Positions 16,101-64,000 of a stretch of 64,000 bases of DNA are shown piece after piece. Under the pieces are notes generated by a model. The model did not search any database, was not told where the DNA came from, and was given only the letters and a program-made list of their open reading frames with translations. Numbering within the stretch: position 1 is the first letter of the stretch; each line of letters begins with the position of its first letter. The stretch lies in NCBI GenBank assembly GCA_950097015.1, contig CATNEN010000001.1, positions 11,346,001 to 11,410,000 on the forward strand. The letters are read 5' to 3'. Made by a program: the position numbers and the translations under genes. The DNA comes from Macrostomum hystrix (lineage: Eukaryota > Animalia > Platyhelminthes).

Positions 16101-16692
16101 CTTCGACAACACAAAGACGAGGGTTCGAGACCGACTGAGAGAGCTGAGAAGCGACATCGGCGGAGTGGTTGAGCAGATGAGGAGACTCGTGAGACCTCTG
16201 CAGTCAGAGAATTTCTACTTTCACCTGTTCACTCTGCTGCCACTGACAGCGCCGCCTGCTGTCACTCAGATTAGGCAAGAATCTGATTATAGTAGTCTTG
16301 AGAAGTCAGCAGACGTGTACAGTGTGGTGCACCATTGTGTTCGCGAGCTGCAGTCAGAGTCTGCAGACAGAGACACCCTGATGAGGCAGCTCAGTCTCCT
16401 GCTTCAGCTGCGGTGGTGCAAGTGCGCCGCCCTGTGCATGACCGCCATGGCGCATCAAATGGATCCTGAAACGGATCTAGAGCGACTCCTTAGAGATAAG
16501 CCTTCGGCAAATCGAAGAAATAGAAAAATTCTTGCCTTGTTATTGTGGCAGTGTGTTTTAGAAAAGGTTTTCATTTTTGTATATACGTTTATGCTTTGTC
16601 ATTTCTTTCTTACATTATGTAAAAAAATAAGTAAAATTATTAAAATCAAAAACGCGCCAAAAATAAATATTTTGTTTTACTTTTTCCCGTAA
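13163..16692 (+). CDS. Ankyrin-repeat + Mab21/cGAS-like receptor (cGLR) nucleotidyltransferase, copy A (5 variable repeats, 3'-truncated, possibly a pseudogene); exons 13163..14403, 14870..15246, 15572..16692
   Basis: 33-aa ankyrin-like array plus canonical ANKs (GATALMLAADAGH, GRTALSRACEAGH). NTase motif TGSYAEG...DSDID, candidate third Asp QDTCHAI, and Mab21 motifs LRVSFSFQEK, LKTYHAKTLLF, MPHFFMP. Exons join in frame (2739 nt). Homology to copy B stops after MAH at ~16455. Confidence 0.85.
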
Positions 16693-17670: not shown

Positions 17671-18497
17671 GTGCAGTGTGAGTCAGTTCAGTGTGGGTCA
17701 GTGCAGTGTGGGTCAGTGCAGTGTGGGTCAGTGCAGTGCGGGTCAGTGCAGTGTGGGTCAGTGCAGTGTGGGTCAGTGCAGTGCGGGTCAGTGCAGTGTG
17801 GGTCAGTGCAGTGTGGGTCAGTGCAGTGTGGGTCAGTGCAGTGTGGGCCAGTGCAGTGTGGGTCAGTGCAGTGTGGGTCAGTGCAGTGTGGGTCATTGTA
17901 GTGTGGGTCAGTGCAGTGTGGGTCAGTGCAGTGTGGGTCAGTGCAGTGTGGGTCAGTGCAGTGTGGGTCAGTGCAGTGCGGGTCAGTGCAGTGTGGGTCA
18001 GTGCAGTGTGGGTCAGTGCAGTGTGGGTCAGTGCAGTGTGGGTCAGTGCAGTGTGAGTCAGTGCAGTGTGAGTCAGTGCAGTGTGGGTCAGTGCAGTGTG
18101 GGTCAGTGCAGTGCGGGTCAGTGCAGTGTGGGTCAGTGCAGTGTGGGTCAGTGCAGTGTGGGTCAGTGCAGTGTGGGCCAGTGCAGTGTGGGTCAGTGCA
18201 GTGTGGGTCAGTGCAGTGTGGGTCATTGTAGTGTGGGTCAGTGCAGTGTGGGTCAGTGCAGTGTGGGTCAGTGCAGTGTGGGTCAGTGCAGTGCGGGTCA
18301 GTGCAGTGTGGGTCAGTGCAGTGTGGGTCAGTGCAGTGTGGGTCAGTGCAGTGTGAGTCAGTGCAGTGTGAGTCAGTGCAGTGTGGGTCAGTGCAGTGTG
18401 GGTCAGTACAGTGTGGGTCAGTGCAGTGTGGGTCAGTGCAGTGTGGGTCAGTGCAGTGCGGGTCAGTGCAGTGTGGGTCAGTGCAGTGTGGGTCAGT
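17671..18497. repeat. 15-bp satellite (gtgcagtgtgggtca), ~55 copies
   Basis: Tandem array whose variant units recur with a 330-bp period. Confidence 0.97.
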
Positions 18498-19085
18498 GAG
18501 TTGTGGCCCGAATTCTTATTTGCCTTTGGTTAACATTTGAGCTGGCTAGCATGTTTCTAACGTGTGTTTTGGAAACTAAATGAAATTATTCTCAAGAGTT
18601 TAATGAACTTCAGAAGTGTGAAGAACTGAAGACTGTAAAAAATTTGTGGATACGCTCATCATGGCTAATCACACTAATCATGGCCATCCTGAATCACTGG
18701 TTTATTTAAGCACATCTTGACTCAAACTCATGAGACTCAAACTCAATATGCAAATATGAGGTGTGAAATACTCTGAAGAAATGCAATAAATTTTGTTTGA
18801 AGTAAACGGTTTGCTCAAATTTTGGAGTCTTGTCAGGCAGCAATTTGCCAATAAACGCTATAAATTGGGTCAGAAATTGTTTCAAAATTAGAATCAAAAG
18901 ATTTTTTGATGATGTTTAATCACTGAGCAAAAAATCTGCCTTTGCCGGTTTTCTTTTATTATAATTATTTAATGGAAAATATCGCTAGGGTTGAAGGCTC
19001 GAGGCGTAAATTTATTGACAGAGGCGCAGTTGAGACTCGTGCCGAGTGCCTTTCACCATAGACAGCCGAAATAAATGTGAAATAT

Positions 19086-19257
19086 GGTATGTATCCCCCT
19101 TGCGGGGGTGTGGTGGCAGAGCCGGCGCACTTAATAACGTTGAGACAATTTTGTTATATTGTCTATGGTCGAGTGAAATAAACCGTTTATTTGCACCGAT
19201 GCAAATAAATGAAATTTACACTGAGATCATAGACATTCGAAGTGGGGGATACATACC
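19086..19257. mobile_element. Possible small MITE bounded by 14-bp inverted repeats
   Basis: ggtatgtatccccc (19086) and gggggatacatacc (19244-19257). Confidence 0.4.
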
Positions 19258-19489
19258 CTTTACCTCATGAGGCCAGTTTTTCCCCTGCTTTCTATGGAAT
19301 CTGTCAAACTGGGAAATGCAAGATCGCAAATTCAAATATCGTAAATGCAGAGATGTACTAGTGCAGGTTTATACTTGGCCCGCGTCTGCGACTTAAATTC
19401 TTCACTCTACTGTTGTCGCAGCTGTCTACTGCGCAGATTATATATTACCTATAGAATCTGTAGGTAATATAGAATCTGTAGGTAATATG

Positions 19490-20135
19490 TGAGAACAGTG
19501 AGTGTGTAAGAACAGTGAGTGTGTGAGAATAGTGATTATGTGAGAACAGTGAGTGTGTGAGAACAGTGAGTGTGTGAGAACAGTGATTATGTGAGAACAG
19601 TGAGTGTGTGACAACAGTGAGTGTGTGAGAACAGTGAGTGTGTGAGAACAGTGAGTGTGTGAGAACAGTGATTGTGTGAGAACAGTGAGTGTGTGAGAAC
19701 AGTGAGTGTGTGAGAACATTAAGTGTGTGAGAACAGTGAGTGTCTGAGAACAGTGAGTGTCTGAGAACAGTGAGTGTCTGAGAACAGTGAGTGTCTGAGA
19801 ACAGTGAGTGTCTGAGAACAGTGAGTGTCTGAGAACAGTGAGTGTGTGAGAACAGTGAGTGTTTGAGAACAGTGAGTGTGTGAGAACAGTGAGTGTCTGA
19901 GAACAGTGAGTGTCTGAGAACAGTGAGTGTGTGAGAACAGTGAGTGTGTGAGAACAGTGAGTGTGTGAGAACAGTGAGTGTCTGAGAACAGTGAGTGTGT
20001 GAGAACAGTGAGTGTGTGAGAACAGTGAGTGTGTAAGAACAGTGAGTGTGACAGAACAGCGAGTGTGTGAGAACAGTGAGTGTGTGAGAAGAGTGATTAT
20101 TTGAGAACAGTGAGTGTGTGAGAACAGTGAGTGTT
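19490..20135. repeat. 17-bp minisatellite (gagaacagtgagtgtgt)
   Basis: Tandem array. Confidence 0.95.
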
Positions 20136-23424: not shown

Positions 23425-26400
23425 TCAGCCGCAGGCCACAGACACGCTCAGCAGCACGCGGCCCTGAAGCTCCGAGTTGGCGCCGGTGGCGGTGGCGCAA
23501 CCGAAGCCGCTGCAGAAGGAGCCGCCGCCACCTCCGGCCTTTCCTGGGGCAGTGCCGGTGCCCCCGCCGCTGAATCCGCCGCCTCCGCCGCCAGCACCGA
23601 TGCGACCACCAGCGCAGCAGCCGCCGCCAGCCCCGCCTCCGCCGAAGCCGCCGTCGCCAGTGGGGCAGGAGGAGCTGCGAGCTCCGCCGAGCCAGCCGTC
23701 GATGCGGCTCAGACCGGGACCTCCGGGATCAGCGAAGGACTCGTTGCTGGGCTGGGCCGAGCCGAGCCAGCCGGCGCCGGCACCGCCGCACGAGAAGAGG
23801 GGGTAGTCGTTGCGGCGATTGGGCGCCACCAGACCCGGCTGACCGGCAGCTCCTCCAGCGCCAGTCCAGTTGTTCTTCGGCCAGCTGTCCGTGCCGTTGA
23901 TGCCGCCGTCGCCACTCACGCCATCTGGGATTTCAGCGGACACGCCATTGGTTTCCATGGTTTCTGTCAATCAGCTCAGCTGGCACACCGCTCGGTGAGC
24001 TGCCAGTTTCCTAATATATTGCTGAAAGTCTGTAAAACTGGCGGACAAGCCAATTTTCACTTTCAGTAGTTCTAAAATATTCTTCGCTCGTACGAATATG
24101 AGCTGCTCAGTTCTTTATCTCATGAATTTCACAACCTATTTGCGGATCTCCGAGTTCTTCGAGCATGCGCAGATCTGTCCTCCAACTGCCTCGAATCTGT
24201 CTGCTAAAACCCTGCTGATACTACTCAATACTCACGATGGAATGAGTAGCTGAAATAGAGTGTACTTTGTCTGTGTTCAATGAAAATGTTTTAAACAGCC
24301 AAGCCAAGTTTTGGCTGCTTCAGTGCTTGCCAGGTCCAATTTGGGCAGTTCAGGTGAGATCGAGCAAAGGAACACCTGAGAGAGCTCTTTTCATTTCTAG
24401 TTTCGTGGCAGATTGAATAAAATGATTAAAGTCACAGTTTTGAATCGCTTTTAGTTTCTCTGATTTTGATGCGATGAAGTCCGTGTTCCTATTTTCTTGA
24501 TTGGCAATTTTTCGTCAAACTGCTTTGGATGGCTAATAAAGAGAATTAAATTTACCGATTAACCGCTTGTCAGCCAGGATTTGCTCTCCATGTTGCTTCT
24601 GTCTAAATCTGCTGCACTGCAGCTTTTGTTGAAAGTTCAAGTCCATTGAATGTGACGCCTGCCAATCAGAGCCCTCGACATCTATGGTCCTTCCTGCCCA
24701 GCAACTCCTGGCCACAGACGCTGCCACAGCTGATCCTGCTCTGCTGTCTGTGACCCTGGCTGAACCTGGAGAGACTGCACCAGTCGCTGAGGCTCATTCA
24801 GTGAATGCTTGAGCTCTGGGCCTACAAAGGCTGCATCATGAGCCCTGAGATGGCACAGATTCAACCTTTGCGGTCACTCACAAGTAAAAACTTGCAGCTT
24901 TTTCTAACTCTGTTAAGAGAGAAAAAAAAATTTTGAATTGCACACTTTCTTCAGGGCCTCGGTTTACTTACAATGATTCCAATATGTCCCTCCGCCTCCT
25001 CCAGCAGCCAGGAGCAGCCGAGGACTGCCAGTGCCGTTGCTGATGTACACGAAGCTGCCACCGCCACCACCTGCGCCATATTCGCACGCCGAGTTGCCAC
25101 CGGCCTGTCCGACCACAATGTCCAGTCGGGTGTCAGCGGCGAGCCAGAAGCTCCCAGCTGATGAGGCGCCTCTGCCGCCGCGGCTCGAGTTTGTCGTGTT
25201 GCCCCCAGCAGCTCCGAAGGCCTCAATGCGGAAGCATGCAGCGAACGGCACGGAGAAGAGCTGAACCGATCCGTTCCGGCCGGAGCTGCTGTCTGTTTGG
25301 TGAGTCGAATAGTGATGCGGCAGTGTGAGAGATTGGCTGCTCACATGTAACGAGTCAGGTGTGAGAAGCTAATCCGCAATGCACTTTGAAAAATTGCTTT
25401 AAAAAAGAGCAACTTAAGTTAAGTTGAAGTAAGATGAAAATTTTATTTTGGTCCTTCTGTTCTGTTTCTGCTTTCTTCATCTCTCCTGGTCCGTCCTTCT
25501 CAGTGTGTCTTCCTTCTTCTCATTGGTTTTTATCTTTAGCCCCCTTTTTCAACCGTTCTTGTGCTCAACTCGCAATCTTCTTTTTCTGCGCCAACTGAAT
25601 TTATTAGTTATGTTTCTTTTATTTTATCTCGCTAATAATTTACCTCATTTATTCACGCTTGTGTCAGCGTTGTTTTGCAATATTACTCGCTGATCACTTT
25701 ACTAAATTCACTTGTTCTTTTTAATCCTTGGGATTCGGGACTGCCACCAAAGGAATCCCACTCTCCTTTTCTGCTGTGCTTTGAAACCCAGTTTTAGCGT
25801 TGGTCTCATTTTATACTCGTATTATTGTTATCGGTCGATTCCTCTCTGTTGTACTTTTCCCTACAAGTTCGTTTGCTATGGTTTCAACTGCAAACTTTTC
25901 AAGTGCCAACGTTCTCTCCTCAAGCTCAAGCTGTTACAGTTGGGTCAAGGGCGTTAATTAAATTATCTTCCCGTTTCCTTTAACATTCGAAAGACATGGG
26001 GTATTTCAAATACCCAGATTTTTCTTCCTTCTGTATCTCCTAAAATATTTAACCAATCGCCTTGATAATCCAGAACACGGCACTCTAGCTGATGAAACAA
26101 CTTCTAGACTCAAATTCCAGAATTCTCGTCGAAGATTCTGGTGGCAAAAACCAACAATATAGGCATAATTTTTCTGCTCACAATTTCATAATGTATCATG
26201 CCGGTTATTAATGCTCACTATTTTGTATTGTGTTGCTGTTTTTAACTATTGTATGGATTCGCTATAGAGGTTCACACAGAACAATGTCAGTTGTCCTTGT
26301 CATCAGTGTCTTCGACAAGACTTGCTGAATATCTTGTTCAGTTAGTCAGTTCATCGTAAAGTGTGATCTCGTCATCTCGCGTTGCGCCGTATCTTAGAAG

Positions 26401-28803
26401 AAGCTCGCATCCACCAATCGATCGTCGTCTGCATCTTCGTGGACTTTCTGAAGGCCTTCGATTCGGTGTCGAGGCGAGTCATTGCGACCATCCTGCGTGC
26501 GTACCATGTGCCTGAGCAGCTGGTAATGGCTGTGATGGCCCTGTACCATGAGACCAAGGCGGCAGTCGTGACGCCAGACGGTCTGTCGGACTTTTTCGAC
26601 ACGTCCTCTGGCGTGCTGCAGGGGGACACTCTGGCGCCCTTCCTGTTCGTCCTGGTCCTGGACTGGGTGCTGCGCGTCAGCCTTCCTGATGACTCCAATG
26701 GCTTTTTGCTCTGTCGCAGAACAAGCAGGCGACATCCCGAGAAGCGGCTCTCCGTTCTGGCCTACGCAGACGATCTGGCGCTGCTTTCAAGCTCTGCGGA
26801 AGGAGCCCAACGACTGCTGGACAAGCTGACGGCCGCGGCAGCCGTGGTCGGTCTGTCTGTGAACGCCAAGAAGACGATGGTGCTTACCGTCCCGGCAGAC
26901 CTGCCCGCTGAGATCCGCTGTCGTAATGCGAACGGGCAGGCGGCGATGCTGCCTCGCTGCACGACATTCACCTACCTCGGCGGTCTGGTGCCAAGCGTGC
27001 AGGACGACATCGCTCGGCGCAGGGCGCTCGCCTGGGGGGCGTTTCGCTCCCTGCGAACTTTACTGCAGTGTCCCGCGCTGCCAGACCGGCTGAGGAGGCG
27101 TCTGTACCAGGCCGTCATCGAAACTGTGCTCCTGTACAACGCCCACACGTGGACCCTGACCAGCTCACAGGAGCGGCAGCTGGACGCCGCGCACGCTGCA
27201 CTTCTGCGCGCTGCCTTCGGAGTCCACTACTCGCCGAACTCCACGACCAACATCAGCAACGACGAGCCGTACCACCGGGCCCAGCTCTGCCGGCCAAGCC
27301 AGCTACTCCGCACCCAGCGCTTGCAGCTGGCCGGCCACGTTATCCGTGTGGCGCTGCCCAGAGCCCCTGCAAGATGTGCTGCTGCTTTCCCTGCAGGGAC
27401 CACGGCGGTGCGGCCAGGCGAGGACACCACGTTTCGTCGACCTGCTGCTGACTGATGCCGGCATCTCCGACCCTCGCGGACTGATCCTCCTGCGCAGTTC
27501 TGCGCTCGCGCGCGCTTTTTGACAGCTTCCCACTCTTTGGCCTCAGCCAGGGTTGCTGTAGTTTGTTGTTGTTGTTGTAAAGTGTGAAAAAAAATTTTCA
27601 GATGGTAGACTGTCATTCGGTTTAGGAGCTTTTGTGAAAATGGCAGCGGGTATTTAAAATAGCATGGTTTTTCTCTGTTCCAGACGTCACCAAACTCGTG
27701 CAGCGTTGCCCCGACTGCAATCAGCTACACCCACATAATGGTCAAGACAGTGATCTTTGGTCACCGTCAGGCTACCCCATTCCAGCGCGCATTCATATGG
27801 ATTGGGCCTACGTAAATATCACTGATAACACTTTGTCATCCGGGGCTCTTTCTCACCTTAGATAGAGGCCTTCCCATGCCGCGATCGGGCAACCGATTCC
27901 GTCATACATTGCCTCAGAACCGTATTCACACGATTTGGCGTTCTGGAGACAGTAGTGTCGGACAACGCACCCGAGTTTATAGCAGACCCACTCACCTCAT
28001 GGTTGCGCGCCAACGGCGATGTCTTAAGACCTCGAGCCTACTTTCAGTTTCGTTTAGAACCTTTGAACTTGCTAATCAATAAATACGCACAATAAACGTG
28101 CCTTGTCAAACACACGTCATTTTCCCACAACCCAAACTCCATTCCACAATCCCAATCCCAGTATCAGCAGCGAATAGACTATGTGGTCTGCTATGGAGCC
28201 ACAGCCACCCGCTGGGATTTTTCTATACCAGATTTCAGCAGACTCACTCTCGAAAACTCGCCAGAAAAGTCGCGACCGAAGCTGCTGCTCGAAGTCATCC
28301 GCCTTCCACAGCCTCACGGCTCCGTCGGTTGGCGAGCCCAGCTGCCTCGACACGTGACTGCCGTTCGGCCCAGTCTGACCCGATGACTCATCGTTGATGA
28401 CGAGCATCTGGCAGACACGGCTGGTCTCATTCAGCACTGCGGCAGCGCAGCCTCTGTCATCGCACCAGTACAGGCACTCGGCAGCCGAGCGCAACCCGGA
28501 CTGGTTGACCAGACTGCTGCTCACCGACTCATTCAGAGTGAGGGAGCCGCTGGCATCTCGACGGAACACCGTCACACTCGAGGTTGTCACTGAGGAAGTG
28601 GATTCGGGTGCAAAATCATGGAAAATGATTTGCGAACAGTGAATGAAGAATGAAGCATGCAAATGCTGCGGCACAATGCTACGCATGCAGAAAGATCCGC
28701 GTCCGGAGCAGCTGGTGGATTGAATGGACTGCTCAAATGCCAACTGGGACTCACCTTCTGCAGTGTGAACAATGAGCAGGACTAAAAGTGTTTGGAGTCG
28801 CAT
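23425..28803 (-). CDS. Secreted PAN/Apple-domain + ALK/LTK-type glycine-rich-domain protein (~403 aa); exons 28803..28755, 28589..28248, 25292..24972, 23924..23425
   Basis: Signal-like MRLQTLLVLLIVHTAE; PAN-like SAAECLYWCDDRGCAAAVLNETSRVCQM; GRD motifs QLFSVP..CFRIEAFGAAGG, GGRGA...F.L...LDIVVGQAG, GGGGGSFVY, LLLAAGGGGG, GGFGGGG, GGGGGFSGG, GGGGGSF. The exons join in frame (1212 nt). Confidence 0.8.
26375..27455 (+). mobile_element. 5'-truncated non-LTR retrotransposon (RTE-like) reverse transcriptase, antisense within an intron of the PAN-GRD gene
   Basis: FVDFLKAFDSV, GVLQGDTLAPFLF, LAYADDL, FTYLG and ETVLLYNAHTWTLT motifs; no endonuclease domain; the 3' end is frameshifted. Confidence 0.9.
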
Positions 28804-29785: not shown

Positions 29786-30248
29786 ATCTCATTCCCACAA
29801 CCACCTCACTCAGCCGACCATTTCACTCGATCAACCGACCATCTCACTCGTTATAACCCTACATTATTCCACCAAAACAGTATCGCATGCTTGAATGATA
29901 AATGTTTTATGCTTTCGTCTAGTTTTCGTCTATGGTCGAAATATCACCCAGGCAGAGCATTGAATTTCAAGTGCTCTATCAGCTTACATGTTTGCAAAGT
30001 TGGTCATAGATTAAAGGTAATTTTTGCACTTTAACTTTTTTTGTTTTTTACTTTCAGGCAATTACTTTAATACAACGGCTTGTATCGCATGCAATGACAT
30101 TTTTCTGTCTTTTGTCGTCCAACAAAAAGTTGCGTAGGCTCATTAGGCGGCAGTTAATTATAATTGTAAAAACTTCAGCAATCTTTTGTGATAAAGCAGA
30201 AAGAAAAATAGCAACATCTGGTCGCATCTCCGAACCATCATTTTCTTA

Positions 30249-32323
30249 CCATTTCCTTTCAATGTTTTCCTACAACTCAATTTTATTAGAATAATTTCAT
30301 TTGCCTAATCACTGCCAGCAACCAGCAGCTACGAGCGAATCTACCGTGCGTCATATTGTTTACTCTAAATTGTAAGCTCTCAACCGAGGCTAAATTGGTT
30401 ACTTGCTTCATTTTGGTTTAAATCCTTGCCCTATTTTTATGATTCTTATCGCCCAATGTCTGCATCTGGCTGTTAAAAGCTTAACTTTTGAATTTTACAT
30501 CTGGAGCGTCAGAGGCATTCACCAAAAAACGAATATGCTGCACTGATATTTAAAGTAATGCGATTCGTACCTGAGTTTACTCCGAAACTTTTTAAAATTA
30601 TCAGTCCATAAATAAGTTTTCAAATTCTACCAATCAGCATCCACTCTGACCAATCAGCATCCACTCTGACCAATCAGCATCCACTCTGACCAATCAGCAT
30701 CCACTCTGACCAATCAGCATCCACTCTGACCAATCAGCATCCACTCTGACCAATCAGCATCCACTCTGACCAATCAGCCTCCACTCTGACCAATCAGCCT
30801 CCACTCTGACCAATCAGCATCCACTCTGACCAATCAGCATCCACTCTGACCAATCAGCATCCACTCTGACCAATCAGCATCCACTCTGACCAATCAGCAT
30901 CCACTCTGACCAATCAGCATCCACTCTGACCAATCAGCATCCACTCTGACCAATCAGCATCCACTCTGACCAATCAGCATCCACTCTGATCAATCAGCAT
31001 CCACTCTGACCAATCAGCATTCACTCTGACCAATCAGCATCCACTCTGACCAATCAGCATCCACTCTGACCAATCAGCATCCACTCTGACCAATCAGCAT
31101 CCACTCTGACCAATCAGCATTCACTCTGACCAATCAGCATCCACTCTGACCAATCAGCATCCACTCTGACCAATCAGCATCCACTCTGACAAATCAGCAT
31201 CCACTCTGACCAATCAGCATCCACTCTGACCAATCAGCATCCACTCTGACCAATCAGCATCCACTCTGACCAATCAGCATCCACTCTGACCAATCAGCAT
31301 CCACTCTGACCAATCAGCATCCACTCTGACCAATCAGCATCCACTCTGACCAATCAGCATCCACTCTGATCAATCAGCATCCACTCTGACCAATCAGCAT
31401 TCACTCTGACCAATCAGCATCCACTCTGACCAATCAGCATCCACTCTGACCAATCAGCATCCACTCTGACCAATCAGCATCCACTCTGACCAATCAGCAT
31501 TCACTCTGACCAATCAGCATCCACTCTGACCAATCAGCATCCACTCTGACCAATCAGCATCCACTCTGACAAATCAGCATCCACTCTGACCAATCAGCAT
31601 CCACTCTGACCAATCAGCATTCATTCTGACCAATCAGCATCCACTCTGACCAATCAGCATCCACTCTGACCAATCAGCATCCACTCTGACCAATCAGCAT
31701 CCACTCTGACCAATCAGCATCCTCTGCTCTCATGAAAAGTCACAAGTCACTGAAGTCGGGTCTCGTCGTATGAGGTGGCAGAAAAAATGAAGGCAATGTT
31801 ACGCAGGCCATACTGATATCGCATGCTCTGTATAATTCTGGCTCAAAAAGCAGACTTGGAAACAAAATTTGGGCCACTCAAATGTTCGATTCGGCCTCTT
31901 GAGCACATGAGCTCAGTCTCGGCTGCGGGACTTCCTCAGCTGCAGCCGAAGGTCAGCTCGGTGCTCCGAAGCCAGCATCTGCAGGCGAGTGAAGATTGGC
32001 GCTCAGGTAAAAATTAGCTCTGTCTCCGAGAGCATGCCTGTAGGGCTGCGTTCTCGTGATTTTAATTTCCTCAACATTAATTTGATCCTTGTTCTGTGCG
32101 TTTCCCTCTTCACTGCTGCCTTGAGTGTGTTACTGCAAACTGCACCAGTGTGCGTGTGCTCAGGAGCGGAATGGACAGAATTGCGTGTCGCTGGCTGCGG
32201 GTCCAATGACTCAAAATTGTGTGCCAGTGCCTACAGTTCCCTGCAATACCCTAAGTCCCCATTACCTAACCGTCTTCCCGTCCTCTCACCCTTGCCCGTC
32301 TCCCACCTGTCCCTCAGCGAGGC
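30249..32323. repeat. Left arm of an inverted segmental duplication (partner 41967..43196)
   Basis: Near-identical reverse complement; the ORF-track peptides at 31823/42467 and 31989/42301 match. Confidence 0.93.
30629..31721. repeat. 20-bp CCAAT-containing satellite (gaccaatcagcatccactct), ~55 copies
   Basis: Tandem array; inverted copies at 42568-42802 and 49247-49553. Confidence 0.97.
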
Positions 32324-33403: not shown

Positions 33404-34180
33404 TCTTAGATTCTAGATTCCCTGCTGCTATCCATGATATCTAGCGCTATATTCTTTAGTTTTATGTTCTCATTCGAATTATTATACTTTCAAAATACAG
33501 AAAAACAATGATTGCTTTCCTGCAAGAAAAAAACGCTAAGTTTGTTAAGAGTAATCCTATTAGCTAGTATACAAATATTATCTCCTAGTTTTGAATCTAA
33601 TAACGATTACAGCAATGCTCGGAACACATTTCTTTAGTTTAGAATATAAAATAACGTATAACATAACAGCTACGTATGCTCTGAAAACAGCTTCGTCATT
33701 TATTTTATAATCCTATTGAATATTGCTTGCAAGAATGCTTGAAAAACGTTAAAATTAAAAATGAACCGAGCTTTGCTCAAAGTATTTTTGAATCTAAAAA
33801 ACGCTGGCAGAAATGCTCGAGAATTATTTTCTCAGTTTTGTATCGAATAAAAGTTGCTGCTGCACTCAAAAAAATATTTTTTCTTTTCTCAGAGCGAGAA
33901 ACTTAATTATTTGCTTTGACAGTAGCTCATTATATCACCAGTTCGTTGTACAATAAAAACCTAAAAGAGAATAATGAAAAACTTATACGAACCGTACTGA
34001 CATTTTTAACTGTTGAGGATAGACTATTACTCAATATATCATGCTACCCCTCGATAATTTATGCAAGCCAGTTAATAAATATCATTCTACCCCCTTGATA
34101 AATTATGCTTCCACCTAGATAATTCATGCTTTTTCATTTATAATTCATCTTTCCCCTAAAAAATGCATGACTCCACCTAG

Positions 34181-37083
34181 ATAATTAATGCTTTCCATCG
34201 ATAATTCATGCTTTCCATCGATAATTCATGCTTTCCATCGATAATTCATGCTTTCCATCGATAATTCATGCTTTCCATCGATAATTAATGCTTTCCATCG
34301 ATAATTAATGCTTTCCATCGATAATTAATGCTTTCCATCGATAATTAATGCTTTCCATCGATAATTCATGCTTTCCATCGATAATTAATGCTTTCCATCG
34401 ATAATTCATGCTTTCCATCGATAATTAATGCTTTCCATCGATAATTCATGCTTTCCATCGATAATTCATGCTTTCCATCGATAATTCATGCTTTCCATCG
34501 ATAATTAATGCTTTCCATCGATAATTCATGCTTTCCATCGATAATTCATGCTTTCCATCGATAATTCATGCTTTCCAACGATAATTCATGCTTTCCATCG
34601 ATAATTCATGCTTTCCAACGATAATTCATGCTTTCCATCGATAATTCATGTTTTCTATCGATAATTCATGCTTTCCATCGATAATTCATGCTTTCCATCG
34701 ATAATTCATGCTTTCCATCGATAATTCATGCTTTCCATCGATAATTCATGCTTTCCATCGATAATTAATGCTTTCCATCGATAATTCATGCTTTCCATCG
34801 ATAATTAATGCTTTCCATCGATAATTAATGCTTTCCATCGATAATTCATGCTTTCCATCGATAATTCATGCTTTCCATCGATAATTCATGCTTTCCATCG
34901 ATAATTCATGCTTTCCATCGATAATTCATGCTTTCCATCGATAATTCATGCTTTCCATCGATAATTCATGCTTTCCATCGATACTTCATGCTTTCCATCG
35001 ATAATTCATGCTTTCCATCGATAATTCATGCTTCCTATCGATAATTCATGCTTTCCATCGATAATTCATGCTTTCCATCGATAATTAATGCTTTCCATCG
35101 ATAATTCATGCTTTCCATCGATAATTCATGCTTTCCATCGATACTTCATGCTTTCCATCGATAATTCATGCTTTCCATCGATAATTCATGCTTCCTATCG
35201 ATAATTCATGCTTTCCATCGATAATTAATGCTTTCCATCGATAATTCATGTTTTCCATCGATAATTCATGCTTTCCATCGATAATTCATGCTTTCCATCG
35301 ATAATTCATGCTTTCCATCGATAATTCATGCTTTCCATCGATAATTCATGTTTTCCATCGATAATTCATGCTTTCCATCGATAATTCATGCTTTCCATCG
35401 ATAATTCATGCTTTCCATCGATAATTCATGCTTTCCATCGATAATTCATGCTTTCCATCGATAATTCATGCTTTCCATCGATAATTCATGCTTTCCATCG
35501 ATAATTCATGCTTTCCATCGATAATTCATGCTTTCCATCGATAATTCATGTTTTCCATCGATAATTCATGCTTCCCATCGATAATTCATGTTTTCCATCG
35601 ATAATTCATGCTTCCCATCGATAATTCATGTTTTCCATCGATAATTCATGTTTTCCATCGATAATTCATGCTTTCCATCGATAATTCATGCTTTCCATCG
35701 ATAATTCATGCTTTCCATCGATAATTCATGTTTTCCATCGATAATTCATGCTTTCCATCGATAATTCATGCTTTCCATCGATACTTCATGCTTTCCATCG
35801 ATAATTCATGCTTTCCATCGATAATTCATGTTTTCCATCGATAATTCATGCTTTCCATCGATAATTCATGCTTTCCATCGATAATTCATGCTTTCCATCG
35901 ATAATTCATGCTTTCCATCGATAATTCATGTTTTCCATCGATAATTCATGCTTTCCATCGATAATTCATGTTTTCCATCGATAATTCATGCTTTCCATCG
36001 ATAATTCATGTTTTCCATCGATAATTCATGCTTTCCATCGATAATTCATGCTTTCCATCGATAATTCATGCTTTCCATCGATAATTCATGCTTTCCATCG
36101 ATAATTCATGCTTTCCATCGATAATTCATGCTTCCCATCGATAATTCATGCTTTCCATCGATAATTCATGCTTTCCATCGATAATTCATGCTTTCCATCG
36201 ATAATTCATGCTTTCCATCGATAATTCATGCTTTCCATCGATAATTCATGTTTTCCATCGATAATTCATGCTTTCCATCGATAATTCATGCTTTCCATCG
36301 ATAATTCATGCTTTCCATCGATAATTCATGCTTTCCATCGATAATTCATGTTTTCTATCGATAATTCATGTTTTCCATCGATAATTCATGCTTTCCATCG
36401 ATAATTCATGCTTTCCATCGATAATTCATGCTTTCCATCGATAATTCATGCTTTCCATCGATAATTCATGCTTTCCATCGATAATTCATGCTTTCCATCG
36501 ATAATTCATGTTTTCTATCGATAATTCATGTTTTCCATCGATAATTCATGTTTTCCATCGATAATTCATGTTTTCCATCGATAATTCATGCTTTCCATCG
36601 ATAATTCATGCTTTCCATCGATAATTCATGCTTTCCATCGATAATTCATGCTTTCCATCGATAATTCATGCTTTCCATCGATAATTCATGCTTTCCATCG
36701 ATAATTAATGCTTTCCATCGATAATTCATGCTTTCCATCGATAATTCATGCTTTCCATCGATAATTCATGCTTTCCATCGATAATTCATGCTTTCCATCG
36801 ATACTTCATGCTTTCCATCGATAATTCATGCTTCCTATCGATAATTCATGCTTTCCATCGATAATTCATGCTTTCCATCGATAATTCATGCTTTCCATCG
36901 ATAATTCATGCTTTCCATCGATAATTCATGCTTTCCATCGATAATTCATGCTTTCCATCGATAATTCATGTTTTCCATCGATAATTCATGCTTCCCATCG
37001 ATAATTCATGTTTTCCATCGATAATTCATGCTTTCCATCGATAATTCATGCTTTCCATCGATAATTCATGCTTTCCATCGATA
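34181..37083. repeat. 20-bp satellite (ataattcatgctttccatcg), ~145 copies
   Basis: Long homogeneous array with degenerate flanking units. Confidence 0.98.
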
Positions 37084-54681: not shown

Positions 54682-57600
54682 TCAAGGCTCCGGCAGCGAC
54701 TTCGCAAACCGCTGCAGCTTTGATTGGACCCAGCCGTCTCTCTGCAGCGCTACCGTTTCCATGGCAACAAGTCGACCGAAGTCAGCTCTGACTGGATGCA
54801 GCCGCGCTCTCACCCACAGCCTCTGCTCCTCATCCTCCGAGCTCGAGTGACCGACGCTGCAGCTGCGAGTGGAAATTCGCCACCGCTTCTCCCTGACCCA
54901 GCGGATCTTCTCCTCATCCTGCGTCTCCATGGCGACGCGTCTCTCGTCCCTGACGGTCTCCATCTGTTGCAGGCTGAACTCCACGTGCTCAGCTTGGTCG
55001 CTGTAGTGAGCCAGAGTGAGCAGCTCCTCCAAGTCCGGGTCCTCTTGCAGCTCTAAGAGCCACGCATCGAAGTCGATTGCTGTGCGATTGCGGAGCAGCT
55101 CAGCTTGGAGACTCCAGCTCAGGCAGCGGAAGTTCACGTACAGGTGCTCAGAGCGAGGCTGTGACAGTCTGGCTGTGAGCAGAGTCTGCGTGAACTCGGG
55201 AAGGAATGGGAATCGAGGCGGAGTGTCTGCTGGGAGGCAGAACTTCCACGCCCAGTCCGAGCCTGATGGCAGCTTTGCTCCGATATCAACAGGCCTCATT
55301 CCACTCTGAACTCTGTGACTCTGGAGCTCCATCGCGAGTCTCTCAGCCTCCTCGGAGTCTCCGAACTTCAAATGCGCCATGGCGGTCATGCACAGGGCGG
55401 CGCACTTGCACCACCGCAGCTGATGCAGGAGACTGAGCTGCCTCATCAGGGTGTCTCTGTCTGCAGACTCTGACTGCAGCTCGCGAACACAATGGTGCAC
55501 CACACTGTACACGTCTGCTGACATCTTATAACTAGCACCTTCCCTTATCTGAGTGACAGCAGGCGGCGCTGTCAGTGGCAGCAGAGTGAACGGGTGAAAG
55601 TAGAAGTTCTCTGACTGCAGACGTCTCACGAGTCTCCTCATCTGCTCAACCACTCCGCCGATGTCGCTTTTCAGCTCTCTCAGTCGGTCTCGTACCCTCG
55701 TCTTCGTGTTGTCGAAGTCGCCGCCGATTCCAGCGTTCTTGAAGTAGAGCGGAGCGCCGGGCATGAAGAAGTGCGGCATGCACTCATCGGGTGAGCTGCT
55801 TAAGTCGATGAAGCTCAGCATCATGTCGAGAGACTCCTTCAGCCGTGAGATCAGATTCTGAGGCTGCCAAGCTTGCCAAGGATTCGGGTCTGTGCCATGC
55901 TTCTCCAGCATGAAGAAGAGCAGAGTCTTTGCATGGTAGGTCTTGAGTCCAGGAGTGTCCAGAGTGAGTGGCAAGTGTCTCTTGAAAATGAACTTGATGA
56001 CTGAGAACAGCTGTCCCTGGACTGTGCTCAGCCGTCTCATGGCGTGTTTCTCTTGGAAGCTGAAGCTCACTCTGAGCTCATTGGTCTCATTCGGTCTGGT
56101 CGCCCTCACGAGGTGAACAGTTAGGACATTTTCCACCCCGTAGCTGTATCGAATCAGCTTTCTGATTCTGTCCTCACAGAAGCCACTGCAGCACTGGATC
56201 GCATGGCACGTGTCCTGAGCAGGCCGCACACCGCATGCCTTGGCTGAGACGGCAGGTTGGCTGCCTGCAGTGAGTGGTGACCAGTGGAGCAGATTTTTGC
56301 GAAAATTTATCGATAAGAAATTGGCAGTTATGTTTAATATCAAGAAATTATAATTATTTCGCTCATCATAGCTCAAAACTATAATTTAGCTGACTTTGAA
56401 ATTCTCAACTTTGAAATCGACAGCGACATACGAAAAGTCAAAATGAAATCCTAAATACTAAAGTATTTATTACTTAACGAAGCAGCATGTTCTGGATGTG
56501 ATCATTCGATTCCCAAGTTAAGGCATCCCATCACTCAAACTGTACGTCACAAGGTAGTAGAAAAATGTGCACTGAAATGTGAACCAGCGGGAAATAATTA
56601 TAAAAAGGATAAATTTAACAGTGAAATACTAACACACGCTCGTAAAAAGATAAAAAAAAATAATTAAAAAAAAGAATATCCGGTGTGACTCACCCGACCC
56701 CACTGCCACCTGAGCGTGACCCTCCATGACCCGCAGCTTCGTGGCAGCTTCACAGTCTTTCCAAAGCTCATTCGTTCCATCGCAACCGCCCTCCAGATGC
56801 AGCAGTTGCCCTTGAACCGGCACAGTCCAGTCAATGTCTGAGTCAGCCGCTGTCCTGCCGTTCACTTGCACCAGACTGTTGGCCCAGCCCTCTGCGTAGC
56901 TGCCTGTCATCTGCATCTGCGAGTTCTGAGTGAGGACTCGAGCGACTCCTTCCAGCAAGTCAGCCATTCTCTGCTGACACATTGCTCTCTCCCGAGTGAA
57001 TCCCGCCTCGCTGAGCAGTCGGTGCAGTTCCTCACTGAGCTGCCAGTCCCGCTGTGAGTCGTCGCTGAGCCTGGAATGATGGGGAATTCAGTCAGCTGAT
57101 GGGTTGTACACCTGCACAGACTGGCATCTCAAGCTGATCAGCTGAGGCGAATTTCCAATCAGAATCAGAAACTCACTCAGCGAGAGCCGAGTCGGTGCGG
57201 AGTCCAGCTGCCTTTTTCTTTTTTCTGCTGCTGGAAAAGGGCGCAGGTTTAGATTAGTTTTACCCGAAACGGTCTGCACGAGTACACCAAGGGCAAAAAG
57301 CGGGTTAAAATTTAGAATATAAAAACGGACTTACTTCGAAGTTCTGTTCTCCAGCAGCCGCAGCACCTGCTGATGTCCCAGCTGCTCCGCTACCTGCGCG
57401 CACTTCTGGCCCCGACTGTCCCGATGACTCGCATCCGCTCCTCTGTCCATCAGCGTCTTGGCTGCTCGCACGTGACCCGCCTCACAAGCTCGCGACAGAG
57501 CTGTCCGACCCTGACTGTCTTCAGCTCGCACTGACGCACCGAGATCCACCAGCCTCTCAATGAGCTCGTGATGACCTGCATCAGCTGCCAGCATGAGAGC

Positions 57601-59484
57601 AGTGGCTCCTGTGCTGTCGTCTGGCAGATCGACATGTTCTCTGCTGAATCGCTTGTCATGGAGGAGTGTGAGAGCCAGTGCGACATGGCCATGGGAGATG
57701 GAGACACAGAGCAGCTGTGTGATCTGAGCTGGCTGCATTCGAGACAGAGTCTGGCTGAGAACATCGTTCCTGCCCTCAATGGCCATCGAGGCGGTGAAGT
57801 TGAGGACTTGGATGGACTGGAAGAGCCACTCGGGCTGAATTCCAAGTTCCTTGACGACATTTTCACGGAGATGAGAGCAAGCCGCGACTGCACAGACATA
57901 GCGAAAATCTTGGTCAGCATCTGTCCCCAACAAAAATTTGACCAGCACTTCCAACTGATCATTGTTTGCAGCAGATTTCGCAGCCTCCTTGCAGCACTGA
58001 TCTCTCAGTGGTTGGTCAGCAATTGTCGGCACCAAAAATTTGACCACTTCCCACTGACCCTCACTTGCAGCAGATTCCGCAGCCTCCTTGCAGCACTGAT
58101 CTCTCAGTGTTTGATCAGCAATTGTCGGCACCAAAAATTTAACAACTTCCAACTGACCATTGATTGCAGCCAATTTCGCAGAGTCCTTGCAGCACTGATC
58201 TTTCAGTTTTTGGTCAGCAATTGTCGGCAACAAATATTTGACCACTTCCCACTGACCATCGATTGCAGCCAATTTCGCAGTCTCCTTGCAGCACTGATCT
58301 TTCAGTTTTTGGTCAGCAATTGTCGGCACCAAAAATTTGACCACTTCCCACTGACCCCTGATTGCTGCAGATTCCGCAGCCTCCTTGCAGCACTGATCTC
58401 TCAGAGTTTGGTCAGCAATTGTCGGCACCAAAAATTTGACCACTTCCCACTGACCATCGATTGCAGCCAATTTCGCAGTCTCCTTGCAGCACTGATCTTT
58501 CAGTTTTTGGTCAGCAATTGTCGGCACCAAAAATTTGACCACTTCCCACTGACCCCTGATTGCTGCAGATTCCGCAGCCTCCTTGCAGCACTGATCTCTC
58601 AGAGTTTGGTCAGCAATTGTCGGCACCAAAAATTTGACCACTTCTAACTGACCCTTCCATGCTGCAGATTCCGCAGCCTCCTTGCAGCACTGATCTCTCA
58701 GTGTTTGGTCAGCAATTGTCGGCACCAAAAATTTGACCACTTCCAACCGACCATTTCTTGCAGCAGATTCCGCAGCCTCCTTGCAGCACTGATCTCTCAG
58801 TGTTTGGTCAGCAATTGTCGGCACCAAAAATTTGACCACTTCCCACTGACCATTGATTGCAACAGATTTCGCAGCCTCCTTGCAGCACTGATCTCTCATT
58901 TTTTCGTCAGCGATTGTCGGCACCAAAAATTTGACCACTTCCAACCGACCATTTCTTGCAGCAGATTCCGCAGCCTCCTTGCAGCACTGATCTCTCAGTG
59001 TTTGGTCAGCAATTGTCGGCACCAAAAATTTGACCACTTCCCACTGACCATTGATTGCAACAGATTTCGCAGCCTCCTTGCAGCACTGATCTCTCATTTT
59101 TTCGTCAGCGATTGTCGGCACCAAAAATTTGACCACTTCCAACCGACCATTTCTTGCAGCAGATTTCGCAGCCTCCTTGCAGCACTGATCTCTCAGTTTT
59201 TCATCAGCAATTGTCGGCACCAAAAATTTGACCACTTCTAACTGACCCTTCCATGCAGCAGATTCCGCAGCCTCCTTGCAGCACTGATCTCTCAGTGATT
59301 GGTCCGCAACTGTCTGCACCAGAAGTTTCACAATTTCCCACTGACTGTGATTCGCAGCAAGACGCCAACGCTTTACACACAGTCGATTCCTTCTGGAGCT
59401 GCTTTTGATTGATCTTAAGTGATTTCGAACTTCGGTTTCCAGCCCCTCTGCTACAGCTCGCTCAAAGCTAATTTTCTGACCCAT
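54682..59484 (-). CDS. Ankyrin-repeat + Mab21/cGAS-like receptor (cGLR) nucleotidyltransferase, copy B (intact, 14 variable repeats, ~1369 aa); exons 59484..57335, 57070..56694, 56264..54682
   Basis: Same introns as copy A (phase 2, phase 1), 4110 nt in frame. N-cap + 14 x 33-aa repeats + canonical ANKs + NTase (GSYAEG...DSDID; QDTCHAI) + Mab21 C-lobe (LKTYHAKT, MPHFFMP) + helical/TPR-like tail (AHLKFGDSEEAERL). Confidence 0.9.
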
Positions 59485-59798: not shown

Positions 59799-59918
59799 AG
59801 CTGTGGATGGGATCAGCTGTGGATGGGATCAGCTGTGGATGGGATCAGCTGTGGATGGGATCAGCTGTGGATGGGATCAGCTGTGGATGGGATCTGCTGT
59901 GGATGGGATCCGCTGTGG
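59799..59918. repeat. 16-bp minisatellite (agctgtggatgggatc)
   Basis: ~7 tandem copies. Confidence 0.9.
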
Positions 59919-60719
59919 ACCCCTGAGGGAGCTTGGCAACCAAATTAACACTGAGGCTGGATGCATGAGACCAGAGACGAAAACGGGCATGAAAATTTAC
60001 TCAATTAGAAGGACATGCCGATCCACATAAATTCCACCAATATACGAGTATTTATTGACCCTCCCCCAGGTTGAGCTTGTCTTGCATGGCAACCAATTCA
60101 ACTGACACTGATTCGTGTACACCTAGCAGGCTGCAATCCCTGAATTCCATTGTCAAAATCTATCACAAATAGTTGAGTTACTGACAAACTCCCCGCCTGG
60201 AGAGGGTGGGAAGTCACCAATATTATCAGAGCTTGTGATTCGCAGTGACTCACGGCTCCCCAGCAGCTCACGGGCAGCGGCACGAAGCCGGCAGTCGCCT
60301 CACGGTTAATGGAAGAAGCAGGTGATGCGGTCCGCTGAAAATGATGTTGAAAACAGGGAGTGAAATTTGAAGTGGATAAGTTGTGCAGTGGATCAAGTGG
60401 ATATTTGATCAACACAACTTGGATTTAATGGATTATAAAACGACAATAAAGTACTTTTATTCATAATTGACTCAACTGATTGAAATAAAAATATCGAAGA
60501 TTAGCTGGAGGTGGGATCAATACAGAGCCCCATCCTATGCCCATTCCAGCTAACCCACAATTTATCGATTCCGTCGCTGGAGTTGTTGATGTGAGAGGAG
60601 GGCCCGGGACAAGACAAAGCTGGGATAAAATCTGAGCAAAGTGACTCACCAGCTCACCAGCAGCTCACGGGGGGCGGCACTGAGTTTTTAATCGTCTAGC
60701 AGATGCTCGGAGAAGCTTT

Positions 60720-60945: not shown

Positions 60946-62837
60946 AGAAGTTACGTTTGGCTTTTCTAAGAATTTGCAGCTCAGCCATGAGTTTTTAGAG
61001 CCAGTTGTGGGTGGGGCATTTTGAAGCCTTGGTCCTGCTGAGTACAGTTGCCCGAAGCAACCAGACAACATTTCAAACTAAGATATGCACTCTCTAACAG
61101 AGTACTCGAGAAGAGCTCAGCAGAGAAGATGCATCTGTACTCAGAGATGAAGCACTCCCCCTTCCTCCGGTGGGGTGATATGAGAATGAGCATAAGAATG
61201 AGCACACCGCCTCCCGTACTTCAACCTCAGGTGAAAATTTCTCCGGTGAAAATAAGCAGAATTGAAGAAGTTGGAAATGCGGACAGCATAGCAACTCATA
61301 GCTTGAGCTGATTGTGCCAAGGTGGGCAGAGGTTGAGCGCCTTTGTTTGCGTCTCCGTCTCCCTCTGTCTCTCAGCAGCAACAATGTACACTGTCAAGAT
61401 GGAGCGATCACAATGCAAGGAATCCACCGGCTGCACAGCATTGTCGATGGAAAGAATCAGGCCTGGCCCTGCCTCCTCATTTATTGTAGCAGTTAGCAGA
61501 CCTTCTTACAGGTATTATCTAAGCAAGAACATGATCAGCCGTGTGGAACAAAGCAACAGCTTTATGGTCCTGTTAATCTTCTCATTAAACTGGATTCCAG
61601 GATGCTGAGGGACTCAACCACAAACTGTCTTTATGGCTTGCAGATTTTAGTAGTAAATAATAAGTAGAATTTCAAAGCCATTATCATGAGATATTGAGCA
61701 GGCGTCTATTTTGTTAATCCAGGTGCTTTGGAATCAACTGAATAAATCAGGGTGATGACCTACCAAACAACTAATATTAATCAAGCATATGTTACAGTTC
61801 TCCCAGACAGTCTGACACTTCGCAGGCAAAGCACCACTCGATTCGATTCGCTAAGAATAATATTTACCTCGGTCTTGTTGCTTACTGTTCAATATCGGAG
61901 TAAGTGGCTTGTGCTCCGATATAATTTGAAACCATGGCAACCCTTCCAGGAACAAGCGACACCTGTGTGTGGACCAGACAATCGCAAGCAACTCAGGCTC
62001 AATCATGGCGTAGGTATTGATTTTGGACTCGGTAGGAAGGATAGAACGAAGGAATCACTCGAGCAGAGAGGAAGAGCTTCCCAACCTGGAAAAAAGAGAC
62101 AGGAACGAGAAAAAAGACAAGAAGCCGCAGAAACTAGAGACCAGAGGTCAGCGACTGGGTCGCAGAGCGCCCACCTGAAAAATTAGAAATAATTAAAAAA
62201 TCATTACTGAATTCCTTTGTGCTGCATTCGCATAACGAATTGGGTCAAAAATGACAAGTTTGTTCGTGCAAGTTGTAAAACCTGCGAAATTAAATATTTG
62301 TATGTTTTTGAGATGAATATTGGCTTGACTGCATATCTCGAAAGCTGCTTTTTACATTCTTCCGTCCGATTCTTGATGATCTTCTTTGCCCTGCTGTCAA
62401 AGCACAGAGAACTGCATCTGCACTTTTATTCAACTGAGTGTCATTCACAAACTGGTTCACTGTGATCATCTGGCTCACCAAAGCCTCAGGTAAATCCTAC
62501 CAATTGTAGTTAGCATTGTATCCCAGAAAAAGGACTCAGGACAAACAGAAAACATTCAACTGATGGATCACATTCAACTAATAGGCAATAGAGAAGCAGT
62601 GGGGCCTAGTTTCCATGGTTACCCGACCGAAACAAAATCTAATAGGCTTTTGATAAAGTACTTTTTATTCGAATTTCAAGCCGCTAGGAAGTGGAGCTTC
62701 CAGTTCGTCATTTTTATAGAAAAAAGACTCACTCAGTAGAGCTTTGAAGGTTGTGAGCACAGAAGCCAGAGCACATGAGACGATACGCAATTTTCTCGTG
62801 ACCATAACTTTAACATTTACCAGTATATCTAAGCTTT

Positions 62838-63827
62838 GACGAGGGAAATGGGAGAGAGGACGAGGGAGATGGGAGAGAAGACGAGGGAGATGGGAGAGAG
62901 GACGAGGGAGATGGGAGAGAAGACGAGGGAGATGGGAGAGAGGACGAGGGAGATGGGAGAGAGAACGAGGGAGATAGGAGAGAGGACGAGGGAGATGGGA
63001 GAGAGGACGAGGGAAATAGGAGAGAAAACGAGGGAGATGGGAGAGGACGAGGGAGATGGGAGAGTGGACGAGGGAGATGGGAGAGAGGACGAGGGAGATA
63101 GGAGAGAGGACGAGGGAGATGGGAGAGAGGACGAGGGAAATGGGAGAGAAGACGATGGAGATGGGAGAGAAGACGAGGGAGATGGGAGAGAGGACGAGGG
63201 AGATGGGAGAGAGGACGAGGGAGATGGGAGAGAGGACGAGCAAGATGGGAGAGAGGACGAGGGAGATGGGAGAGAGGACGAGCAAGATGGGAGAGAGGAC
63301 GAGCAAGATGGGAAAGAGGACGAGGGAGATGGGAGAGAAGACGAGGGAGATGGTAGAGAGGACGAGGGAGATGGGAGAGTGGACGAGGGAGAAGGGAGAG
63401 AGGACGAGGGAGACGGGAGAGAGGACGAGGGAGATGGTAGAGAGGACGAAGAAGATGGGAGAGAAGACGAGGGAAATGGGAGAGAAAACGAAGGAGATGG
63501 GAGAGGACGAGGGAGATGGGAGAGAGGACGAGGGAGATGGGAGAGAGGACGAGGGAGATGGGAGAGAGGACGAAGAAGATGGGAGAGAGGACGAGGGAGA
63601 TGGGAGAGAGGACGATGGAGATGGGAGAGAAGACGAGCAAGATGGGAGAGAGGACGAGGGAGATGGGAGAGAAGACGAGGGAAATGGGAGAGAAGACGAG
63701 GGAAATGGGAGAGAGGACGATGGAGATGGGAGAGAAGACGAGGGAGATGGGAGAGAAGACGAGGGAGATGGGAGAGAGGACGAGGGAGATGGGAGAGAGG
63801 ACGAGGGAAATGGGAGAGAAGACGAGA
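62838..63827. repeat. 21-bp purine-rich satellite (gacgagggagatgggagagag)
   Basis: ~47 tandem copies, with nearly all purines on one strand. Confidence 0.95.
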
Positions 63828-63830
63828 ATA

Positions 63831-64000
63831 CCCACACTGCACTGACCCACACTGCACTGACTCACACTGCACTGACCCACACCGCACTGACTCACACTGC
63901 ACTGACTCACACTGCACTGACCCACACTGCACTGACCCACACTGCACTGACCCACACTGCACTGACCCACACTGCACTGACCCACACTGCACTGACCCAC
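63831..64000. repeat. 15-bp satellite (cactgcactgaccca), running off the window end
   Basis: Same unit as the arrays at 17.7 kb and 50 kb. Confidence 0.95.

Follow-up and report, generated by a model that had tools for sequence, protein, structure and literature searches.

Gene structure and transcripts

The locus described here lies in a 64,000-nucleotide stretch of the Macrostomum hystrix genome (the window), which corresponds to positions 11346001-11410000 of contig C1 in the 220-Mb, 42-contig assembly that was scanned. On the minus strand, between window positions 54682 and 59484, it carries an intact, transcribed gene of the cGAS-like receptor (cGLR) clade, composed of three long open frames (exon 1, 59484-57335; exon 2, 57070-56694; exon 3, 56264-54685). 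From the N to the C terminus, the protein comprises an N-terminal cap, 14 ankyrin-like units, canonical ankyrin repeats, an optional basic cassette, a bilobed nucleotidyltransferase of the cGAS/Mab21 type, and a helical tail resembling tetratricopeptide repeats (TPR). Its predicted length is ~1,387 residues if the cassette exon is included and ~1,369 if it is skipped. The gene was searched and folded exon by exon, and a homologue from Macrostomum lignano served as proxy for the whole core. Its parts are as follows (slashes in splice sites mark the exon boundary):

59341..59484, minus strand: start codon and N-terminal cap (residues 1-48); starts MGQKIS, with the same N terminus in the closest paralogues
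57955..59340, minus strand: 14 tandem 33-aa (99-bp) ankyrin-like units, from Tandem Repeats Finder, the unit table, and Pfam Ank_2 in 11 stretches
57335..57954, minus strand: remainder of exon 1, in which a degenerate unit and a linker precede canonical ankyrin repeats (residues ~595-716); Pfam Ank, Ank_2, and Ank_4 at residues 595-689, donor aa/gtaagt, transcript joints at 57335
57177..57230, minus strand: 54-nt in-frame cassette exon; joints 57230/57335 and 57070/57177
56694..57070, minus strand: exon 2, with spine helix and nucleotidyltransferase N-lobe, from translation, motif conservation, and joints at 57070 and 56694
55630..56264, minus strand: exon 3, part one, with third-Asp strand, RVSFSF strand, and Mab-21_C helical lobe (~55747-55965), from Pfam, the MAB21L1 match, and the Sp-cGLR1 profile match
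54682..55629, minus strand: exon 3, part two, with the 315-aa family-specific helical TPR-like tail, as modeled by AlphaFold2, and the stop codon (54682-54684)

The splice sites could be read directly. Exon 1 ends in tcg aa/gtaagt and exon 2 starts with ccag/g ctc agc; exon 2 in turn ends in tcg g/gtgagt and exon 3 starts with gcag/gc agc, and the codon phases agree. Transcript contigs from four public runs, three of them small runs from one study, were mapped over 54682-59484. The three small runs yielded many contigs of at least 99% identity, several of them with zero differences, for example, at 55336-55478, 57670-57795, 57871-58001, and 54777-54914. Since transcript depth was zero across 56292-56613, within the intron between exons 2 and 3, and since the joints are bounded by CT..AC in plus-strand orientation and thus by GT..AG on the gene strand, these three runs were judged to be RNA. 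Junction 56264/56694 was present in three runs and junction 57070/57335 in one contig of one run. An earlier note on this DNA, made from the sequence alone, had predicted three exons spliced in frame at exactly these two junctions. Both were recovered, and exons were joined in the transcript contigs rather than ending after the ankyrin exon, yet the note had overlooked the 54-nt cassette exon at 57230-57177. In all four runs, 57335 is spliced to 57230, and 57177 to 57070, so that most transcript contigs show four coding exons, not three; the cassette was skipped in one contig. It is basic and lysine rich, and its whole codons read SRKKKKAAGLRTDSALA. Annotated M. lignano homologues have the same residues across both junctions, plus 15 to 25 extra residues at the position of the cassette.

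The N-terminal MGQKIS(F) agrees with G-x-x-x-S, the consensus for N-myristoylation, and is kept in the closest subfamily (L015-L018, L020, L027, and L031); other subfamilies begin with MASKSND or MDSQ. As motifs, this start and the lysine-rich cassette hint that targeting to the membrane or the nucleus is regulated. At 59799-59919, ~300 bp before the start codon, there is a tandem repeat of 16 bp (7.6 copies, 98% matches). Two plus-strand open reading frames (ORFs) within the array (57568-58647 and 58705-59241) were rejected as genes and regarded as by-products of the repeat.

Nucleotidyltransferase core and helical tail

Exon 2 reads ...QMTGSYAEGWANSLVQVNGRTAADSDIDWTV..., including TGSYAEGW and DSDIDW, and thereby supplies the GS motif (56899-56904) and the two aspartates of the DxD motif (56836-56838 and 56830-56832). 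The third catalytic Asp is encoded in exon 3 at 56212-56214, within PAQDTCHAI, and the gene in the window thus carries all five catalytic residues. Exon 3 matched Pfam Mab-21_C (PF20266; E 1.1e-6, above the cut-off) and, weakly, the C-lobe of human MAB21L1 in a direct comparison (E 0.019); for exon 2, i.e., the N-lobe, no Pfam family was matched. To cover the core, 69 family members were aligned (alignment A1) with M. lignano P0001 as the reference, a protein of 659 aa that has no ankyrin part and is 73% identical to exon 3. A profile of all 69 sequences against the PDB was swamped by ankyrin matches. Rerun with 13 ankyrin-free members, it matched Sp-cGLR1 (E 3.7e-6) and cGAS (E 1e-3), in both cases via the C-lobe only.

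The AlphaFold2 model of P0001 was confident, with a predicted local distance difference test score (pLDDT) of 89.2 and a predicted template-modeling score (pTM) of 0.88. Its best PDB matches in Foldseek were all cGAS (E 1e-7, template-modeling score ~0.55 on the target). VIA-align superposed residues 24-332 of P0001 on cGAS 149-506 with a Z of 13.9 and a root mean square deviation of 3.8 Å over 264 residues; its cGAS superpositions had Z scores of 13 to 14 with a deviation of 3.6 Å over ~260 residues, and Z scores were 13.2 to 13.3 against Sp-cGLR1 (8gjy), Cv-cGLR1 (8gjw), and MAB21L1 (5eog). The model therefore supports a bilobed nucleotidyltransferase fold of the cGAS/Mab21 type for the core of this close homologue. 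In the model, G65/S66 follow beta-1, D87/D89 open beta-2, and D148 is placed on a later strand, which is the canonical layout. Across the 69 members, the catalytic positions were occupied by G in 62, S in 63, and D in 58, 59, and 56 sequences (~85 to 90%).

We also observed a conserved H..C.C...GH cluster in an N-lobe insertion (~H100-H123 of P0001) and an invariant CC after the third-Asp strand. Judged by these motifs, the two may form a metal site reminiscent of the zinc thumb of cGAS, with which it is not collinear.

Folded alone, the tail (54685-55629, 315 aa) was predicted as helical hairpins plus a small sheet (pLDDT 84.8, pTM 0.82). No Foldseek match to it was found at E <= 0.001, and ESM Atlas returned nothing above 0.87. 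The best VIA Z of 8.8, below the meaningful level for helical repeats, was to generic TPR-like or alpha-solenoid proteins. From its model, we call the tail a family-specific TPR-like domain.

Variable ankyrin array in an expanded family

Tandem Repeats Finder detected a 99-bp unit in 14.5 copies with 89% matches at 57910-59345, whose translation consists of 14 in-register 33-aa units. In Pfam, exon 1 matched Ank_2 (E 2.6e-71, 11 stretches) and Ank (E 7.7e-41), the canonical Ank repeats spanning residues 595-689, and direct reading showed the array unit to be collinear with the canonical repeats of its own protein. The unit framework, EVVKFLVPTIAD..CC, is near-invariant; positions 1, 14-17, 24, 26-28, 30, 31, and 33 are variable. 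An identity matrix revealed that units 2-3 equal units 4-5 at the nucleotide level, as does unit 8 unit 10. In 20 paralogues, each retrieved along with the sequence upstream of it, array length ranged from 0 to 40 units, and 127 of the 160 units pooled from 16 arrays were distinct. In long arrays, each unit had its nearest relative within its own array, which fits recent tandem duplication inside the array on top of gene duplication; in short arrays, the nearest relative was found in other arrays. The array thus evolves by tandem duplication of units, and both length and content differ among paralogues. In the genome scan, this type of array was found only at loci of the exon 3 family, which include further long arrays.

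Among pooled units, helix 2 (EVVKFLV) had near-zero entropy; the peak was at unit positions 30 and 31, and positions 26, 15, 27, and 22 came next. In the collinear alignment with canonical repeats, we take unit positions 30/31 to be positions 13/14, and 17 to be position 33, of ankyrins and designed ankyrin repeat proteins (DARPins). Positions 13, 14, and 33 are classical target-contact positions. The variation of the array appears to be located mainly on the face formed by helix 1 and the loop, i.e., the target-binding side of ankyrins.

The elements that the earlier note had read from the window are borne out by these results: 14 near-identical 33-aa units and canonical ankyrin repeats, a Mab21/cGLR nucleotidyltransferase whose GS, DxD, and candidate third Asp fit the strands of the homologue model, and a helical tail, for which AlphaFold2 gave a confident model. 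The profile searches it had foreseen returned both Mab-21_C and Ank_2. The predicted fold of P0001 is of the cGAS/Mab21 type with the acidic triad on the expected strands, and the arrays are far from invariant among paralogues.

The same note had proposed a genome-wide count of paralogues; exon 3 had at least 86 matches in the 220 Mb, many of them 85 to 93% identical and clustered on contig C1. Close protein relatives were all from M. lignano (73 to 78% identity), and down to ~E 1e-9 the family was confined to Macrostomum. Judged by sequence comparison, the clade is a Macrostomum-specific, massively expanded set of cGLR genes.

A second ankyrin-cGLR paralogue is present within the window itself, at 12940-16692 on the plus strand, with five units and the MGQKIS start in exon 1 and DIDW in exon 2. 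Its tail is truncated or replaced, since its exon 3, 88% identical, matches only residues 1-312 of 526. Another paralogue lies just past the window end. Candidates for intronless paralogues, which displayed long open frames, were rejected: in these, exon 3 ran into other repeats or into C-terminal ankyrin repeats, and they were not unspliced genes. In one such locus (L013, 1333-4878, minus strand), exon 3 continues into ~50 tandem copies of the 11-aa unit NHPSKLRASSV and its variants, a second array unrelated to the first. Another branch (L014, 3768-5990, plus strand) has the reverse order, with cGAS-like core, tail, and then C-terminal ankyrin repeats. The M. lignano protein P0031 has this same order, starting with a Mab21-like core whose active site is degenerate, and its ankyrin repeats are followed by a caspase domain (Peptidase_C14, E 2.7e-25). 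A separate canonical Mab-21 gene was found on contig C24 (Pfam PF03281, E 3e-35).

Further features of the window are an XRCC1-like gene at 4060-7370 on the plus strand (XRCC1_N, E 1e-54; an ORF further downstream encodes a BRCT domain), an ORF for a mariner-type transposase (Transposase_1, HTH_48) at 9535-10377 on the plus strand, and a reverse transcriptase fragment (RVT_1) at 26382-27455 on the plus strand. By their domain matches, the latter two are identified as mobile-element remains between the two paralogues of the window. Blocks of strong GC skew at 18001-20000 (+0.39), 30001-32000 (-0.38), 34001-36000 (-0.41), and 62001-64000 (+0.42, also AT skew of +0.40) are probably strand-biased simple repeats.

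Proposed function, alternatives, and related systems

The best explanation overall, which we hold with about as much belief as doubt, is that the locus belongs to an expanded cGLR clade in which the array senses a ligand, the enzyme makes a messenger, and the repertoire diversifies. A ligand, more likely a protein than a nucleic acid, would be bound by the ankyrin array, perhaps with participation of the tail. Binding would release or activate the nucleotidyltransferase, which would then produce a nucleotide second messenger. Unequal crossing-over plus selection at contact positions would diversify the specificities of paralogues, as in the arrays of fungal NOD-like receptors (NLRs). The messenger would be read by a downstream receptor, for which the sole candidate found is a divergent STING-like ORF. 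We regard this functional reading, which takes the array for a variable sensor of ligands, the enzyme for a source of second messengers, and the whole for a system of immunity or allorecognition, as plausible. In its favor we count the transcript-supported junctions, the modeled fold, the retained catalytic residues, the size of the family, the behavior of the array, including the nonsynonymous excess described below, and the STING-like ORF.

Of STING, which the earlier note had also named, the genome offered a single similar ORF on contig C2 in a scan with the STING_LBD profile (G000:C2:9104529-9104996, minus strand), part of a 337-aa open frame (L035, G000:C2:9103029-9106496; ORF 1000-2010, minus strand). 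It contains ...FAWNFAFTFLRLILPKL..., including an LRLILP motif. All 30 PDB matches at E <= 10 were STING, and all were weak (best E 0.064). A phmmer search at E <= 1 found no homologue, and no transmembrane exon was identified upstream. This divergent, sub-threshold ORF is therefore a receptor candidate only, put forward on its profile similarity.

Several observations weigh against this explanation. The Pfam STING_LBD match of the ORF on contig C2 (E 1.4e-5, profile positions 3-145) scored 25 bits, short of the cut-off of 27, and a word-based protein search found no homologue of it. The fold was modeled for the 73%-identical homologue P0001 and not for the spliced protein of the window itself, and the triad was placed by strand position. 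The nucleotidyltransferase core is near neutral in charge and hence gives no hint of the ligand. Transcript contigs may derive partly from near-identical paralogues: because copies of 85 to 93% identity exist, not every contig is assignable to the copy in the window, and in the short assembled contigs, joints within the array look the same as differences between paralogues. Degenerate active sites in P0020, P0025, P0031, and P0035-37 within the 69-member alignment imply a noncatalytic mode of action for some of its members. The excess of nonsynonymous (pN) over synonymous (pS) differences in the array (pN/pS of 0.33/0.20 at variable sites versus 0.09/0.23 in the framework) is suggestive only, because repeat units depend on one another and the sites were picked once the differences had been viewed; at DARPin positions chosen a priori, mean pN was 0.27 and mean pS 0.20. 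Finally, in the parts of Li et al. 2023 (PMC9980059) drawn on here, to which all statements about that survey refer, the M. lignano rows nos. 89-90 of Table S3 have no "active" label, whereas characterized enzymes there are labeled. At a guess, the missing label of these cloned proteins likely reflects an absent ligand.

The same unlabeled relatives, tested in vitro (PMC9980059, rows nos. 89-90), are in line with an alternative that we consider unlikely, namely, that the gene encodes a nonenzymatic scaffold of the Mab21 type, in which the cGAS-like domain is structural or regulatory, the array recruits partners, and no messenger is made. The loss of catalytic residues in some paralogues agrees with such a scaffold, as does P0031, whose ankyrin repeats and caspase suggest direct signaling at the protein level. 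MAB21L1, whose cGAS-like domain is regarded as a structural or regulatory module, matched the P0001 model as well as cGAS did (Z 13.3). However, GS, DxD, and the third Asp are kept in most of the 69 members, down to 20 to 30% identity, a pattern difficult to account for unless catalysis is under selection. Moreover, Mab21L1/2/3 are given in the Figure 1 legend of PMC9980059 as having no predicted functional active site, whereas the gene in the window keeps the triad.

Quite unlikely, in our estimate, is a fast-evolving family outside immunity (reproduction, sexual conflict, or another lineage-specific process) with array variation as a mostly neutral by-product of unequal crossing-over: 99-bp tandem repeats do expand and contract mechanically, the identical two-unit blocks record very recent duplication, and members come from Macrostomum only, down to ~E 1e-9, but framework positions are under clear purifying selection (pN/pS ~0.39), diversity is limited to few positions that include known ankyrin contacts, unlike neutral decay, and all reading frames examined were open.

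Characterized cGLRs sense double-stranded DNA or double-stranded RNA through the enzyme's own surface, and, to our knowledge, most animal cGLRs are orphans without a known ligand. A clade whose array looks suited to recognizing proteins, varies among paralogues, and is joined to an intact cGAS-like enzyme would be a natural system in which to seek cGLR ligands other than nucleic acids, and it would allow repeat shuffling as a diversifier of innate receptors to be tested in animals, as in fungi. The idea is testable, because M. lignano is a laboratory model with RNA interference and transgenesis. The finding also corrects the impression of flatworms as lacking cGLR signaling.

According to the survey cited above, most platyhelminths have Mab21-like proteins only and no other cGLRs (PMC9980059). 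The same survey counts 87% of cGLRs as enzymes that stand alone and notes TPR or ankyrin modules in some; Stylophora (Stylophora pistillata) has three cGLRs joined to ankyrin or death domains. Among the 140 cloned enzymes of Table S3 are M. lignano proteins that bear the motifs of this family. These M. lignano entries share GS..EGWG, SD.D, LRVS.S..E, and a long tail with the family, and the ankyrin-fused cGLRs recorded there, including those of S. pistillata and the cloned M. lignano proteins PAA86972.1 and PAA45980.1, combine, like the gene in the window, ankyrin repeats with a cGAS-like nucleotidyltransferase that has a predicted active site. The earlier note knew of no described example; as far as the architecture is concerned, this was wrong, since both ankyrin- or TPR-fused cGLRs and cloned M. 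lignano proteins of the same clade appear in PMC9980059. In contrast to the present data, those parts of the survey describe neither tandem arrays of near-identical units nor paralogues that differ in copy number, nor hypervariability focused on some sites, and in the cGLR literature, including that on Macrostomum and on ankyrin-repeat expansion, no account of near-identical variable arrays was found. The fusion architecture and the flatworm clade had already been catalogued in 2023; the variable array and the scale of the expansion appear to be new.

Structurally, vertebrate cGAS and two invertebrate receptors, Sp-cGLR1 and Cv-cGLR1 (7uyz, 8gjy, and 8gjw) share with the P0001 model the bilobed fold (Z 13 to 14 over ~260 residues at 16 to 22% identity) and with the gene in the window GS, DxD, and the third Asp. 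Unlike these proteins, the latter has no N-terminal disordered DNA-binding region and instead carries ~700 residues of ankyrin repeats and the 315-residue TPR-like tail; its near-neutral core contrasts with their strongly basic one. MAB21L1 (5eog) has the same fold (Z 13.3 to the P0001 model) and a sequence match in the C-lobe, and it is the gene in the window that keeps the acidic triad. Fusion of ankyrin repeats to an effector of immunity or cell death is also known from platyhelminth caspases with ankyrin prodomains (PMC11463336). P0031 links the family to these ankyrin-caspases, whereas the gene in the window has no caspase domain.

A close parallel for the array is found in fungi. Fungal NLR arrays (the WD40 repeats of HET-E, as well as ANK and TPR arrays) consist of near-identical units in variable number, with few variable surface positions, a nonsynonymous excess, and unequal crossing-over. 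The Macrostomum array is alike in its near-identical units and copy-number differences, and apparently also in variability focused on few positions. It differs in that it is joined to a cGAS-like nucleotidyltransferase rather than NACHT or NB-ARC, in its animal host, and in that variation was compared here among paralogues. By this analogy, which we offer tentatively and think rather doubtful, and under which the clade would be the first among cGLR classes to possess a recognition domain that is modular and can evolve, Macrostomum might be the animal counterpart of fungal NLR repeat diversification: unequal crossing-over and positive selection in the arrays would generate the specificities of dozens of germline cGLRs, which would couple array-sensed ligands (proteins or others, but not nucleic acids) directly to messenger synthesis.

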